Part shown: positions 18,876 to 56,929 of the stretch, in pieces
Numbering within the stretch: position 1 is the stretch's first letter
How the letters are laid out: every line of letters begins with the position of its first letter
Assembly: GCA_964188305.1 (NCBI GenBank)
Contig: OZ076885.1
From: Podarcis bocagei
Lineage: Eukaryota
Length of the DNA stretch: 64,000 bases
Reading direction: 5' to 3' (one strand)
Translations under genes and position numbers: made by a program
Notes under the pieces: model-generated
The model's database searches: none
Seen by the model: only the letters and a program-made list of their open reading frames with translations
Told to the model about the DNA's origin: nothing

Positions 18876-20894
18876 GTACTTTCATAATAGCAACATTGGT
18901 AACAACCACCCTTTTCTTTTCGTCAGCCTGCGGCAAACCATTCCATGTGAACTCCGTTCTCCGATCAACTCAGCTGCTTCCACACACATAGACACAAAGA
19001 ATGAACTACTTTCACAGCCTGACTATAATTCTGAGGAATGAAGCAGTAAGATACATTGCCAAAAAAGCAATCTTTTCTGCAGCTATGCTTGTTATAAAGA
19101 CCATAGATTATTTTGGATGAACAGAACCCTCTATGATGAAGTAATAACATCATTTAAGCAGAAACACAATAGACAATCTCATAATGTCTCTGGTCTTTTG
19201 GGACTTGGCATCATAATCTGAAAATAAGCTGCAAAGCCATGATTTTGAGCCAATAATTGTCACCCGATCAACCAACTTTGGCTAAAGTTTCTTTTCAGAA
19301 TTTCTAGACAATGGATATATATATATATATATAGGCAAGAAGTTAATATCTAGCCCAGAAATACAAATGCCCAGCCATTTGTAAACACATTGCTGTTTAC
19401 TCTAGCTCCACGGTGCTCTCATAGCCGGCTTCTGAATCTGTGTACACATGTTACCCCTCGATGCAGAGTCGTAGCCTTGAGAAATGCTGGCATCAGGAAA
19501 ACTTAATCCACGTTCACTTTGCAGTTAATCTGAGAGGTGTGTGTGTTTGAGACAGCCATTGAGCATGCATGGATAATGGCACATGCACAGATTATAGCTT
19601 CATTAATAGGTTGCATGTGCAGGGGAACCAAACAGGTAATGCATGTCAGGCGAAGACTTCTCCACCTGCTCTCTGGTGTATGCAACAGCATGTGACTTGG
19701 AATGTACTGGGGGAGGGCACTCATTGCATTTTAAGACACTCGTGTGTACATAGCCTTAGTCACTCTTAAGGAATAAGCATCCAGGTAGCTAGGAGTCCTA
19801 AAACACACAGTATTCATTTTAAGGTAATTTTGACTAGGGAGCTGATAGCATTCCAAAATGAAGTCTGCTTCCAGCAGTCTGTACAGTTTTTGACCACATG
19901 ATCAGCTAATGTCAACTAGCTAAACCAGACACGGAGAGCCTGTGGCCTTCCCAATGTTTGCCTGTGATGGCTGGGGCTGATAGGAGTTAGGAGTCCACTA
20001 TTGGGAGGGCCACGGGTTTCCTGTTCCTGAGCTGAAAGCTTGATAGCTTTTCCATAGCTAAACGCTATGACAGAAAAACAGACATGGCAGGCTCAGTACA
20101 GGTTGGCTTTTGCAGTCTCTGTTGCCCAAGGCTGAGCTGATTGTGAGAACATCTCTAAGAATTACTCAAACGGGGGGGGGGGGGAGAGAAGCTAGGCATA
20201 GAAGTCTGGAAAAGAATAAATAGATTCCTTTTATGATACCTGGAAGAATTCTGGAATTGCTGGTATAAAGAAAACATGTTTTTCTTCAATTGGCTTGCAG
20301 TATGAAGCTGTAAAATACAAAAAGAAGCTACAAATCTGAAAAGCAAGGCTTTATAAGCTATACTGTTTTAAAATGCAGCTGGTGCTTTTCCTGGAGCAGA
20401 AAGCCAGAGGTCTAAGGGCTGGAGAAGGGGGGGTGGAGAGAGAGAGGTTCAGGCCTCCAGGCTAAGGCTGTTAGATGTTATGAGCTGTGTACTGAAACTT
20501 AGGCACCTTGTTGCCTAAGGAAACATAACCCAAATTTGATGCAACAAATTTCTGTGCCACAGGCTGAAAGTAAGCATGAAGAGAGGGATATAAGAAAAAA
20601 GTAAGTTAGAGAGCTGAACAGGGATGAAATCTGAGTATGGAACATTGCAATCAAACATTAAGAGGGGCAAATGTATCCACACACACAATCTTACTAAACA
20701 TACTGTACCAAAATATTTCAAAAATTACTTTGTTGAGACCCAGGGAAGCAATTTTCTATCAATTAGAGTTCAGCACATCCATTATTTTAAAAAATGTAGA
20801 GTCAACAAGAAAGTGCTGCTCTTTTAAGTGGTATAATAGAGCACGACCTAGTTTTGCTCATCTGATTTTTCTAAATAGCTCTATTTTGACTCGC

Positions 20895-21815
20895 AAGTTA
20901 AGAAGGATATTGACAAACTGGAATGTGTGCAGAGGAGGGCAGCCAAGATAATCAAGGATCTGGAAACCAAGCCTTATGAGGAACAGTTGAGAGAGTAGAG
21001 TATGTTTAGCCTAGTAAAGAGGAGATAAGAGGAGATAAGACAGGCATCTTCAAATATCAATAGGGCTGCCACGTGGAAGATGTTTTCTCCTGCTCTGGAA
21101 GCTAGGACCCAAACCAATACATTCAAGTTACAAGAAAAGGTTTCCACTCCTCTTTAAATGCATGTTCTTCTTGCTCTCTTATTCTATATGTTAGACCTTA
21201 TTCTATAGGTTAGATTCTATATTCTATCTTCTTAAGTTGCCAGTCCTCCTTACAAGGGACCTCCAGCACTTTCCATTTTTGGGCTAACAAAATGCGAGCT
21301 GTTGTTGTTGCATATTTTTCTGGGAGTTATCTAGTCCAACCCCATGCAATGCAGAAATTTCAACTAGACAGATGGCCATTCAACCTCTGCTTAAAGACCT
21401 GTAAGGAAGGAGAGTCCACTACCTCTCATGGGAGTCTCTTCCACTGTTGAACAGCTCTAATGTTCAGAAACTTATTCCTGATGATTAGTCGGAATCTCCT
21501 TTGTGGAGTATATGGAAAATAATTGCACAGAGCTGAAAACGCTGGCAGCATTAAGATAAATTCAACAGGTTAATTAATACTCGAGTGTTGTATGATTGGA
21601 GAACTGACTAAAATGGTTATAGTGAAATATGCAAGTATAATAGATAAACACAATGAACCATGGAAGGGGAAGGAGGGAAGACATTGGTGATATGGTATTA
21701 TGTAAAATGAAAAATATTTTGAAATGTTAAACTGAAAATCCAATAAAAATATTTTTTTAAAAAATAGATAATCCTCAAGGGTTCCTTCCAACTCTAAAGT
21801 TCTATGATTCTATGA
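20895..21815 (+). mobile_element. CR1 LINE 3' end carrying a nested L1 and an internal inversion
   Basis: Plus frame KKDIDKLECVQRRAAKIIKDLETKPYEEQLRE..; its continuation lies inverted at about 21320-21502; (TTCTATGA)n tail at 21765-21815. Confidence 0.88.
21135..21764 (+). mobile_element. L1-clade LINE 3' end inserted in CR1 (5' part now on the minus strand at 21135-21320)
   Basis: Minus YATTTARILLAQKWK..REQEEHAFKEEWKPF joins plus VEYMENNCTELKTLAALR*; AATAAA and A-rich tail; degenerate TSD tagataa. Confidence 0.85.
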
Positions 21816-21963
21816 TTGTATGTAAACTGTTTAGAGATCATGATGATAAATCGACCAATAAATATTGCTAAATAAGAAATAAATAAATCCTTGACTATTG
21901 GCCGTGCTGATTGTTCGAATGGGAATTGGAGTCCTAGCAACATGAGTGGGGGGCAGGTGTTTG

Positions 21964-21996
21964 TGTATGTATGTATGTATGTATGTATGTATGTAT
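21964..21996. repeat. (GTAT)n microsatellite
   Basis: Tetranucleotide run. Confidence 0.9.
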
Positions 21997-22523
21997 ATGC
22001 CCTTTTCACTTTATTTTTAAGCTAAGCAGTCTTTCTGTCAGAAGCCAAAGTGAAACCAAGGCAGGTACACTTCAATCATGGAAGATCTTAGACTGCCTAG
22101 TTAGCTCATAACTAAGGTTGTCTGCACACTTCATGGCAATGTGCATCCACGGCTGGATGCAGGTACCGTTTTGGGATGCTGTAGCCATGACATCATCCCT
22201 TTGCCATCCCTGCCTCATGCTATTTGCCAATCTAAAGTGCCTTCTGCTGGAATGCTTATAAGGTGTGTACGAACTGAGTGATAAAGGGCATTCAGGGCTG
22301 TGTGCAGGCACCCTTGCAAGGCTTTGTACACATGATGTCATCCCTGCTCCACCCTATTGGTCAATCTGAAGCATCTTCTGCTGGGACGGTTACAATCCAC
22401 TTTGTGCTGGGAATGCACTTCTCATGTGCTTGCTTCCTACATCATACACAGAAAGCACTTTCTTAGGCCACCTCACACTGGGGCAGGCTGACTGACATGT
22501 CAGGGCTGTGCCACTGCCCTTCA

Positions 22524-32294: not shown

Positions 32295-32501
32295 NNNNNN
32301 NNNNNNNNNNNNNNNNNNNNNNNNNNNNNNNNNNNNNNNNNNNNNNNNNNNNNNNNNNNNNNNNNNNNNNNNNNNNNNNNNNNNNNNNNNNNNNNNNNNN
32401 NNNNNNNNNNNNNNNNNNNNNNNNNNNNNNNNNNNNNNNNNNNNNNNNNNNNNNNNNNNNNNNNNNNNNNNNNNNNNNNNNNNNNNNNNNNNNNNNNNNN
32501 N
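32295..32501. other. Assembly gap (207 N)
   Basis: Run of n. Confidence 1.
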
Positions 32502-32598
32502 TCATCAGAACTCAGTTCTGGCACCTCTCAGCTGGGCGCCATTGCCATTGTAAGAGAACAAGGGTGAGTTCATGCTAAGTTCTGGCACCTCTTTTTCT

Positions 32599-32830
32599 NN
32601 NNNNNNNNNNNNNNNNNNNNNNNNNNNNNNNNNNNNNNNNNNNNNNNNNNNNNNNNNNNNNNNNNNNNNNNNNNNNNNNNNNNNNNNNNNNNNNNNNNNN
32701 NNNNNNNNNNNNNNNNNNNNNNNNNNNNNNNNNNNNNNNNNNNNNNNNNNNNNNNNNNNNNNNNNNNNNNNNNNNNNNNNNNNNNNNNNNNNNNNNNNNN
32801 NNNNNNNNNNNNNNNNNNNNNNNNNNNNNN
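32599..32830. other. Assembly gap (232 N)
   Basis: Run of n. Confidence 1.
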
Positions 32831-41157: not shown

Positions 41158-41500
41158 TGCTTTGCATGCCAAGGGGCCCAGGTACAATTCCTGACCTCTC
41201 CAGGCAGGGCTAGAGAGGCACCTGTCTGAAAGCCTGGAGATATGACCAGTCAGGGTTGACAATACTGGACCGTGTCAGTATAGGGCAACTTCCTATGTTC
41301 ACTAACTCTCTTCACTTTCAAAGTAGCTTGACTTCTGCTGCTTGCTTGTTTGTTTATATTATTTTCTGTTCCCACTGTTCTTCCCAAAGGAGTTGAGGAC
41401 AGCAAGCATTAAAGTGGTAAAACAATACAATGAAGAGTTGTTGTTGTTTTAAAAAAAATATTTAAAACATTTTAAAAAATCTTTAAAAGAACATCTTGCA

Positions 41501-41912
41501 AAAAATGGAAAGAAGTAGAAATCCCAGCAAAGGAAGAATGGATACAAAATCTTACGGAATTTGCAGAAATGGAGAAACTTGCCAGACGAATAAGAACTCA
41601 AGATAACAAACTTTTTATAAAAGAATGGAAATGGCTTATTGAATATTTACAGATAAATTGCAAACAGATAAGAACATTGGCAGGGTGACTGTAATAACCT
41701 GCAGTTTTATAAGAGTATATATTTAAAGTAGATGAATAAATGAGCAAAGTAAGTTGATTTGGATATGCAGAAGATATTAAAAAATAAATTTAAGGAACTG
41801 CAGAAAGAGGGGCAAGGAAGTCAGAATTTGAAATGTTAAGATGATTGTAAAATTAGTGAAATGTATAAACCCGAAAAGCATAAATAAAATTAATAAAATA
41901 AATAAATAAAAT
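41501..41912 (+). mobile_element. L1-clade LINE 3' end
   Basis: KWKEVEIPAKEEWIQNLTEFAEMEKLARRIRTQDNKLFIKEWKWLIEYLQINCKQIRTLAG*, (AAAT)n tail, 11-bp TSD AACATCTTGCA at 41490 and 41913. Confidence 0.88.
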
Positions 41913-43116
41913 AACATCTTGCAGGGGGGTAGGACTAGACTACCCTTGGGTACTTCCCAGTTTTACAGTTATATGATTCTGTCTAAAGTATGAAAAAAGA
42001 AGTGGTACCAAAGAAGACATGTTAAGGAAATAAAAGCTTTAGGCATGTAGAGCTATATGTGTGGTTCTTTCAAAAAATAAAATGGAAATAATTACCTATT
42101 GCCCAAAAAATGCATCCAAATGGCAAAAGCAGGGGGGTGGGCTTGGATCAGGCAATTGCTCAAATGGTCTCCTTTGCTGCCCCCCTCCCCCATCAATAAA
42201 AATACATAGCTAACTGTGGTTCTCCACCCCCCCCCCTAACAAAAGGCCTGCCCCCCAAACAGAAATCCTGCAGTGACCTTTCAAAATATTGCTCTATCCC
42301 CTACTGCAAGCTATGACATGGGACACACTAGAACAACCACATCTGGATTTCCAAAGGACATGGTACATTAGATTTAAAAAATGTGATCCTCATGAAATGC
42401 TGCTGATTCAGGGAAACCCTTACAAGGAATTCAGAACAATCCAACTTTTGTGGTTCGCCTTTGCTGTCTTGCATATTTGACTCCCCCTTACAGTTAGGGC
42501 AGTGGGGGAGTTTTGTTGGTTTTTTTGTTTTACACGAAACTATCTGCACCTGCTGGCTTGCCTATAAAATGTGGTTTCAAATATGAAGCAATAAAATCCT
42601 GCAATTAAACTTAAGACACACGATTCCAGTTACGGTCTGAATTCACACAGTGGCAACAAGCCTTCCACAATGCCCGAGGTGATGGGTTGTGTGTTTCTTT
42701 ATAAAGTACATTTTGAATCAGGGAAATTACCCACCCTCCTCTCATTTAACCCTTTCCATGTAGTTTCATATAATTGTCACTTTAAGGAAGGGCAGGGAAT
42801 TGATTTCGGTCCAAGGACCAGATTCTGTGAAAGTTCCTACGCACATCTCTCTATCCTCCATCCAGGTAATGAAGAGGCATTACCACAGTTCAGTGGCACA
42901 TTTCAGCCAGGCAAAAACACTTGAGGAGGATGCAGTTCAGGGTTTGTGCAGGGCATGGCTTATTGGGGAAGGTGGTCTGGGAAAGAGTGATGAGGGAAAA
43001 GAAAAATAGGTGGGGGGGCATGTTCAGCCCCTGGGGCCTCAGGTTCCCACCCTTCACTGCCTTAGGTCTTTTGATGAAACATACTTATTTTGGCTACCTC
43101 AGCACAATTAACTTCC

Positions 43117-54621: not shown

Positions 54622-55431
54622 TAAGAATGTAAGAAGGGCTGCTGGATTGGACATATGGCGCATCTCGTCCAGCACCCTGATCTCACACTGGCCAACTAGA
54701 AGCATATGGGAAGCACTTAAGCAGGATTTAAGCTCAACAGCACCTTCCCTACTTGCAGTTCCCACCAACTGGCATTGAGAGGCATAATGCTTCCATCGGT
54801 GAACGTAAAAGTAGCGTGGCTAGAAGCCATTGGCTTCCTTTTCCTCTATGAATTTGTTTAATCCTCTTTTAAAGCCGGGATGCGGGTGGTGCTGTGGGTT
54901 AAACCACAGAGCCTAGGACTTGCCGATCAGAAGGTCGGCGGTTCGAATACCCACGACGGGGTGAGCTCCCGTTGCTCGGTCCCTGCTCCTGCCAACCTAG
55001 CAGTTCAAAAGCACGTCAAAGTGCAAGTAGATCAATAGGTACTGCTCCAGCGGAAAGGTAAACGGCGTTTCCGTGCGCTACTCTGGTCCGCCAGAAGCGG
55101 CTTAGTCATGCTGGCCACATGACCTGGAAAAACTGTCTGCGGACAAATGTCGGCTCTTACATAGAAGCAAATTTCCATACACTGTGTACGTTCTTTTGTC
55201 TGTCCTGAACCTCCCAACATCCAGCTTCATTGAATGTCCCTGAGTTCCAGTGTTATGAGAGAAACTTTCCCTGTCCGCTTTCTGCATCCCATAAATAATT
55301 TTATCCACCTCTGCCACGTTTCTTCTTACTCGCTTTTTCTCTAAACTAAAAAGTCCCAGATATTGGGATTTTTCCACATAGGGGAGTTGCTAAATCCCTG
55401 GTTGCCCTTTTCTAAACCTTCTCCAGCTCTA
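54622..55431 (-). mobile_element. CR1 LINE 3' end interrupted by a Sauria SINE
   Basis: Minus ORF LGLFSLEKKRVRR..TQGHSMKLDVGRFRTDKR is the CR1 ORF2 C-terminus; tail taagaatgtaagaag. Confidence 0.85.
54877..55156 (+). mobile_element. Sauria SINE, 3'-truncated
   Basis: gggatgcgggtggtgctgtggg..ggttcgaatacc..; lacks the (ACCTTT)n tail. Confidence 0.9.
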
Positions 55432-56929
55432 ACATGGACCAGTTGTCTGACTATAAGCTAGATGGATCCATGGTTCTGACTCGGTTAAGGAAGCTTCCTG
55501 TTTCTTAGGAGAAAATATAAATGTGGGCTTTCGTGGGAGTGACAGCTTTCCACAATTCATTGTTAGATTATGCTCATTTTGGGGGACCCTGGGAGATTTC
55601 TGGTGTAGCTTGCTTGCTACTGTGCTATGGTGAATATGTCCTAACAAACTGGAAAGAACTGAATGGAATAGACAAATTATGTAGCCTCATTCTGTAGCCC
55701 TTAATAGCTTCTGCAAAGAGGCAACCGTTCCTTCTTGAATGAACTAGATGAACTGTAGAGTTGGAAAGCATCTGAAAACCATCCTATCCCTTACACTATG
55801 GCAAAATTCTTCTGACCCAGCAGGCTATCCTGTATCATTTGAGCTATAAAGTGTCACAAGTAGAGAACAGAAACAAGCGAGGCATGCCCTCCCAGAGGAG
55901 TGTGTGGCAGAGGCAGAGGAGACTTTACTAAGTCCAAGGCACTCCTAGCTTCAGCATCTCATCTCCCAGCAAACCTGTGGGGCATATGTCACTCCTGGCT
56001 GGGATCCTAAGCATACTTGGTTAGGAAATAGAATGAAATAAATGAGACTTACTTCTGGATAAACATGGTTAGGGTTGCAGCCAGGAATAACATAGCCTAC
56101 TGGAGGCAGCTGCCTGCTCCCTATACTGCTGCTGGCTGGATGTTGATGCACCATAACTGAGTGGAGGAATGCTCTGCCTCCAGTTCCTCATCTTAAAAGA
56201 AAAAGAAGCTGACATATCCAGAGCGTGGAGACATCAGGTAGCTTGTTTACCTTGTCCAGCCATTAACTTTCCAGTCTCAAACTCAAGGCTGGTACCCATC
56301 CTTCACACATCAAAGTGATAGCATTGCAAGATACCTCTTAGTGGTATGACCTGCTCCAGATGACATCATAGTGATGTCAGGTGACACTGTGCTTTGAAAC
56401 CCTGGCTATTGGACTTCAGAGCACAGCATGAGGCTGCTTGAAAGCTCTTTTGCAAACAGCCCCAGGCTCTCTGAATCTCCAGAAGCTGGACATTTAAAGA
56501 GCAGGATGAGACTGTTTACAAAAGGGCTTTCTAACAGCCCTGACCATGCTTTGACTGCGCAGGTGATTTGCGGTAAATCAGCAAGAATTTCTGCCTTCCG
56601 GTTGTCTGACAATAGGAACAACTTTAAAGCTCTAAGTTTGGATTCCTAGAAAGAATGCTGGGCAGCATGGTGGAGAGAAAGGAACCAGGAGAGGGTTTGT
56701 ATGTGAAAGGACTTGTGAGTTTGTTCTGGTGCTGATTGCAAATCCCTGGGCTAGACATGTACTCAGAGGCACTCTGTTCCTTAGCGTTCCGAGCTGAGCT
56801 AGTAATTTACTCCAGGATGTGGTGGTTGGTGGAACTCAGGGTTCTTGTGAAAAACAAGCTTGAAGTCTATACACCCTTGGCTGAATGGGCAAATGGTCTA
56901 ACTTGGGTAAGGCAGCTTGTGATATACTC

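Follow-up and report, generated by a model that had tools for sequence, protein, structure and literature searches.

Positions 20898-21822 of the window (the whole stretch of Podarcis bocagei DNA that was analysed, 64,000 nucleotides) hold the remains of two retrotransposons, a CR1 element and, inserted into it, an A-tailed element of L1 type. The locus opens on the plus strand with CR1 part A (20898-21134), a 5'-truncated ORF2 C-terminal region (KKDIDKLECVQRR...TFKLQ) interrupted by frameshifts and stops, which was assigned by alignment to the CR1-derived bird proteins P0005 and P0017. Its left edge is where read depth rises to repeat level and where the loose ends of other copies begin, at 20898. 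As an earlier note on this DNA had reported, the plus-strand CR1 frame ends in ...ttcaagttacaag at 21134 and an L1-type C-terminus begins at 21503; both are seen in the sequence. Within part A, the 10-bp motif aggagataag occurs twice in tandem (21018-21038). A short-read contig from organism B (X16) is 10 letters shorter over 20962-21186, and this organism probably does not carry the duplication.

Between the two plus-strand pieces lies a 368-bp block (21135-21502) that reads on the minus strand. Its breakpoints are ambiguous by 3 nt, giving a minimum extent of 21138-21499, and both of its junctions are bridged by contigs. Read along the minus strand, the block consists of CR1 ORF2 (21502 to 21334), the heptamer tagataa (21333-21327) and the 5' part of the A-tailed element (21326 to 21135). 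The first of these, CR1 part B (21334-21502), continues ORF2 (ERRFRLIIRNKFLNIRAVQQWKRLP, a stop, EVVDSPSLQVFKQRLNGHL...) as far as the left arm of the CR1 3' hairpin. The heptamer, which appears on the plus strand as ttatcta, the reverse complement of tagataa, is the 5' copy of the target site duplication (TSD). The L1-type 5' part (21135-21326) comprises 192 bp of ORF2 C-terminal coding sequence, with its 5'-truncation point at 21326 and the breakpoint at 21135. A 19-bp near-tandem repeat (cttattctatatgttaga / cttattctataggttaga, 94% identity) is found within it at 21178-21214.

To the right of the block, the plus strand carries the 262-bp L1-type 3' part (21503-21764). It contains the last 18 ORF2 codons (VEYMENNCTELKTLAALR) with the stop codon at 21557-21559, then a 3' UTR and finally an A-rich tail up to 21764. 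It is followed by the 3' TSD copy tagataa (21765-21771), and the TSD named in the earlier note is thus present at 21327-21333 (minus) and 21765-21771 (plus). CR1 part C (21772-21822, plus) closes the locus. It holds the right arm of the 3' hairpin region and, at 21799-21822, the three octamers gttctatg attctatg attgtatg. The arms ggttggac...tccaac stand before the octamers, and the hairpin that they would form is putative. The octamers match the CR1 microsatellite motif ATTCTRTG (PMC8665684), and part C has no poly(A) tail, as a CR1 3' end should look. The right edge again lies at repeat-level depth, and other copies in the short-read contigs stop at about 21815-21817. The earlier note had placed the L1 insertion in the CR1 3' UTR. 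The part of this claim that stands is the position in the hairpin region at the CR1 3' terminus, with the octamers ~30 nt downstream; a strictly 3' UTR location is putative. Past the CR1 end, in the 3' flank at 21844-21931, there is no or almost no contig depth in X12 and X13 (organisms C and D), while X15 and X16 are covered; an indel or divergence may account for the low depth in organisms C and D.

The A-tailed element has the marks of an L1-clade insertion, namely an A-rich tail running to 21764, a 7-bp TSD and a 454-bp 5'-truncated body. Its EN and RT parts are absent owing to the 5' truncation. The ORF2 C-terminal pieces are short and gave no Pfam hit, no PDB-sequence hit and weak ESM Atlas scores. 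By Pfam, no longer L1 or CR1 copy was found among the longest open reading frames of the window. The L1 label, taken from the earlier note, fits the general look of L1 ORF2 C-termini. A probable assignment to L1 is based on three features: the tail, the TSD and the presence of a sister copy at 41501-41912. This copy is the only relative of the element within the window and has an A-rich tail and an 11-bp TSD, aacatcttgca (41490-41500 and 41913-41923). The sister copy also sits inside the 3' end of a CR1-like element. In an alignment of 57% identity (region 41490-41995), its insertion point falls ~40 alignment columns upstream of the point homologous to the first insertion. Both L1-type insertions in the window (2/2) therefore lie in CR1-type 3' ends, which may reflect chance or a target preference.

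Coding continuity across the junctions

The earlier note held that reverse-complementing 21135-21502 repairs two broken reading frames at once, and a script that re-inverted the block reproduced this at either end. At the left junction, part A runs in one frame from ...RTQTNTFKLQ directly into ERRFRLIIRNKFLNIRAVQQWKRLP, a stop and EVVDSPSLQVFKQRL.... At the right junction, ...REQEEHAFKEEWKPF is followed in one frame by VEYMENNCTELKTLAALR and the stop codon.

The right junction can be compared with the sister copy within the window. The claimed colinearity with the L1-type copy at 41501 holds: the alignment to this copy (41501-41912) crosses the junction and reaches the stop codon with no gap, the nearest indel being ~70 nt upstream of the junction. 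The two copies share 46% amino acid identity over 35 aa and 54% nucleotide identity, and belong to different subfamilies. When the re-inverted locus was compared with the window by nucleotide BLAST, no further copy crossing either junction appeared; within the window, copies that cross the junctions were detected by translated searches only.

For the left junction, no second copy of the same CR1 subfamily was found in the window. A CR1-like copy at 55192-55389 is colinear across the junction, weakly (E = 1.2), and external proteins took its place as evidence. These were collected with a 66-residue CR1-like peptide taken from the 55192-55389 copy (minus strand), which was searched by HMMER against 1.84 billion representative proteins and gave 42 hits; a word-indexed protein search with the same 66-aa piece yielded no candidate. 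The best-matching hits that were looked up are wood stork and turtle gene models containing CR1 fragments. The re-inverted CR1 peptide, with an X at each stop, was then aligned to the hit proteins. It shows 48% identity to P0005 over 134 residues (E = 1.2e-31) and 48% identity to P0017 over 124 residues (E = 4.7e-29). The left junction is spanned by 20 of the 32 HSPs, and around the split codon there are no gaps within +-15 aa against P0005, P0017, P0011 and P0002. In a control reading of the present arrangement, with no re-inversion, the best alignments end at residues 83-85, exactly at the junction. Identity to the CR1-derived segments is 48% for the wood stork proteins and 37% for the turtle gene model. 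The protein records are not themselves named CR1, and we take the label from the CR1 C-terminal motif. The in-window source of the query extends over 55192-55440 (minus). It is the C-terminal part of a CR1-like ORF2 from another clade (LGLFSLEKKR...GHSMKLDVGRFRTDKR) and ends abruptly after RFRTDKR; its relatives include turtle BBS7 and stork ATPase gene models with absorbed CR1 pieces.

Short-read contigs extend the comparison to further copies. Several contigs at single-copy depth join minus-strand 21141-21151 to plus-strand 21506-21534 (for example, the joint 21141/21506). These are un-inverted paralogous copies, in which the L1-type family runs straight through the breakpoint. Other contigs join 21329 or 21324 (minus) to 21779 or 21784 (plus), and the joints 21329/21779 and 21324/21784 are CR1 copies without the L1-type insertion, i.e. 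the empty site. Overall, the rearrangement behaves as a pure (balanced) inversion: frame and colinearity return at both junctions and no bases are lost or gained, an exactness that is resolved by protein and paralogue alignment and not by an orthologous ancestral allele.

The arrangement in independent read data

Contigs from public short-read runs (4 runs from 4 studies with 4 organism labels) were mapped on 20700-22000. The left junction is crossed by contigs from all four runs: X15 over 20962-21180, X16 over 20962-21186, and X12 and X13 both over 21089-21171 with 0 mismatches. The right junction is crossed by X15 over 21408-21558 with 0 mismatches and by X16 over 21418-21535. Among the contigs listed for organisms C and D, no right-junction contig with at least 31 nt on both sides was found. 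The junction contigs have depths of 70-107, 13-19, 11 and 21, against unique-flank depths of 111, 16, 8 and 22. The inverted arrangement thus exists independently of the assembly, at the left junction in four runs and at the right junction in two. An assembly error, which the earlier note had named as a possible refutation, is not the explanation, as the junctions stand in independent contigs at single-copy depth. Further, no assembly gap was found near the locus; N runs occur only at 32295-32830, with none within 10 kb.

The contigs do not simply repeat the haplotype of the window. In X15, 9 nt (CTATTTTGA) are inserted after 20880 and duplicate in tandem the sequence that borders the CR1 element on its upstream side (20872-20889), and X16 differs from the window by ~2% divergence and a 10-nt indel. 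Both therefore represent different haplotypes from that of the window. The inverted form is the only or the homozygous form seen and looks fixed in the samples examined, with the proviso that contigs show presence and not absence, so that a rare un-inverted allele could drop out. Since it stands at single-copy depth in all four, the inverted form is old enough to be common to the four samples. Just right of the right junction, at 21504-21505, X16 (organism B) shows T>C and G>C, and X13 (organism D) shows T>C. These differences could reflect normal CpG-type substitution or clustered changes left by repair next to the breakpoint.

Order of events and competing explanations

The locus is very probably a real germline micro-inversion that followed two nested retrotransposon insertions. 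The order put forward in the earlier note (CR1, then L1, then inversion) is supported by the anatomy, in which the L1-type element interrupts the CR1 element and the inversion interrupts both. So is the clean nature of the inversion, since the two L1-type halves abut to the base and the CR1 parts likewise. Within the inverted segment, the truncated 5' end of the L1-type element still adjoins the TSD copy and the CR1 sequence, sense to sense, which is a normal 5' junction. Because this junction between 5' end, TSD and CR1 is intact, the insertion had been completed canonically.

The reconstructed history would begin with the insertion of a 5'-truncated CR1 element (20898-21822 in ancestral order). 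A 454-bp, 5'-truncated, A-tailed L1-type element would then have entered the CR1 3' hairpin region and generated the 7-bp TSD tagataa. Finally, a 368-bp piece would have been excised or bypassed and rejoined in reverse with 0 bases lost or gained. This piece would comprise the last 176 bp of the upstream CR1, including the 5' TSD copy, and the first 192 bp of the L1-type element. While these steps and their order can be read from the present arrangement, we infer the molecular route of the last one, and the L1-type insertion and the inversion would presumably be separated by a gap in time. In one route, two double-strand breaks ~365 bp apart would be repaired by end joining, possibly via the 3-nt AAA/TTT match. 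In the other, two replicative template switches of the FoSTeS/MMBIR type would occur at the same AAA/TTT microhomologies. The sequence cannot separate the two; given an in-register inverted match of no more than 3 nt, we lean slightly towards breakage and end joining.

This match arises as the block begins with aaa and ends with ttt, for which reason the breakpoints are ambiguous by 3 bases (21135-21502 down to 21138-21499). The AAAGG/CCTTT pair described in the earlier note is indeed present at the breakpoints, one base out of register. Simulation with random 368-nt segments of the window gave P = 0.013 for a 5-nt inverted match at the ends, with a tolerance of +-1 nt, and P = 0.059 for a 3-nt in-register one. 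The microhomology is a hint, weak and post hoc. An exchange strictly within AAAGG/CCTTT was rejected, as it predicts caagAAAGGtttcc at the left junction, where caagAAAAGGtttcc is observed, with one A more than predicted. An origin of both breaks in L1 endonuclease activity was also considered and discarded; T-rich motifs occur at both sites, and nothing was found in its support. The longest inverted match nearby (16/18 nt, 20888-20905 vs 21228-21245) lies away from the breakpoints. It ties the CR1 5' junction to the inverted L1-type part, would have formed direct repeats before the inversion and is probably due to chance.

Among other accounts of the locus, the one with some appeal compresses insertion and inversion into a single mutation. 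A break during target-primed reverse transcription would have released the upstream (reciprocal) DNA end together with the 5' part of the nascent L1, which were flipped and religated. Consistent with this, the host DNA that was inverted coincides exactly with the reciprocal end of the insertion, the un-inverted intermediate is seen in 0 of the 4 samples, and a few insertions with an inversion of genomic DNA at the reciprocal end have been recovered upon L1 expression in cultured cells (PMC11702581). However, the junction between TSD and L1 5' end within the block is finished, canonical and sense to sense, the two L1-type halves meet exactly, neither overlapping nor losing a base, and the left breakpoint is 176 bp from the integration site. 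A single event would also need both of the double-strand breaks that a later inversion needs, together with a coincidence in timing, and no feature of the breakpoints requires L1 enzymes. We consider it improbable; if true, it would provide a natural, germline-fixed case of an outcome so far known only as rare products in cultured human cells. Classical twin priming, in which the inverted 5' part would stem from a second reverse transcription primed at the upstream target end, has hardly any probability. The L1-type 5' part is inverted relative to the 3' part, and CR1 part A is directly followed by antisense L1 from the inner breakpoint, just as a twin-primed cDNA would give. In twin priming, however, the TSDs are direct and surround the whole insertion, and no host DNA is inverted (PMC11702581); nor does anything separate the inverted 5' part from the 3' part. 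At the locus, the L1-type parts are separated by 176 bp of host CR1 that contain the 5' TSD copy and are inverted as well, and the TSD abuts the 5'-truncated end of the L1-type element instead of its inner end. The argument of the earlier note against twin priming is thereby upheld: one TSD copy and 169 bp of further CR1 are inverted between the L1-type parts, and the mechanism is excluded because it would leave TSD and host DNA uninverted and the TSD adjoining the inner end.

A block misoriented by the assembler, or a chimeric read, is a general possibility for any such structure, and the run that holds the junctions best may be related to the source sample. Against this stand the single-copy depth of the junctions in short-read contigs across 4 runs and 4 studies, the different haplotypes of X15 and X16, and the 10 kb free of N runs, all of which make an artefact very unlikely. 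It could also be supposed that the minus-strand CR1 and L1-type pieces are separate elements that were inserted independently between the plus-strand ones, given that CR1 is present in thousands of copies (judged from depth ratios) and that nested or adjacent fragments are common. This reading can be given next to no credence: both junctions are colinear with their partners to the base, the minus-strand L1-type part has no tail of its own, and the minus-strand TSD copy matches the plus-strand copy. Further, if the L1 is taken out, CR1 part B runs on into part C (joints 21329/21779).

Comparison with known inversions and meaning

An inversion that followed two completed insertions, as preferred here, can be set beside several known systems. 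In a set of 45 polymorphic human inversions (83 bp to 415 kb), 47% are non-homologous, and 18 of 21 human non-homologous inversions have small indels at their breakpoints (PMC6748972). The locus resembles this non-homologous group in being devoid of long inverted repeats, in a size within the 83 bp-415 kb range, in looking like a single unique event shared by descent, and in its proposed origin by end joining or FoSTeS/MMBIR. It differs from the 18 of 21 in that both junctions are perfectly clean, which is the minority outcome. It also differs in the source of the ancestral state, which comes from the split transposons and not from an outgroup or a second allele.

The pure microinversions described between human and chimpanzee are 17-33 nt long, with flanking inverted repeats down to 3 nt (PMC8755829). 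The locus shares with them the exact reverse complement and, at its edges, a 3-nt inverted repeat, which is the shortest class in that study. Unlike these 17-33 nt events, it measures 368 nt and is >10x longer. DNA of 368 nt can physically form a loop, and for this length the single-break MMBIR model of PMC8755829 is less compelling.

L1-associated inversions offer a further comparison. As in L1 twin priming and reciprocal-end inversions (PMC11702581, citing Ostertag and Kazazian 2001), the L1-type 5' part is inverted relative to the 3' part, and as in the reciprocal-end cases, the host DNA that is inverted is that on the reciprocal side of the insertion. Unlike both (PMC11702581), the locus keeps a canonical junction between TSD and L1 5' end inside the block, has host DNA between the L1-type parts and places one breakpoint 176 bp outside the insertion. 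In the retrotransposon recombination-mediated inversions of PMC2603318, which involve inverted L1 or Alu pairs, the breakpoints also lie in retrotransposons. In contrast to those cases, the breakpoints here lie in unrelated CR1 and L1-type elements that share only 3-5 nt, and recombination between inverted copies therefore cannot be the cause. Homologous recombination between repeats was rejected on the same grounds and because no long inverted repeats of the kind used in NAHR were found at the breakpoints.

The event belongs to a known mutation class and is a clean, mid-sized, non-homologous inversion in a squamate. No function is expected of it because all of its parts are dead transposon fragments, and the locus alone changes no biological view, its parts being non-functional and the mutation class well known. 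Its value lies in the two nested dead transposons, which act as a built-in ruler and allow a small inversion to be reconstructed to the base without an outgroup. Such inversions are rare genomic changes with little homoplasy, and this one could serve as a clade marker among the related lizards that share it. If split transposons were read in this way across whole genomes, the rate and the breakpoint spectrum of small inversions in squamates could be measured.
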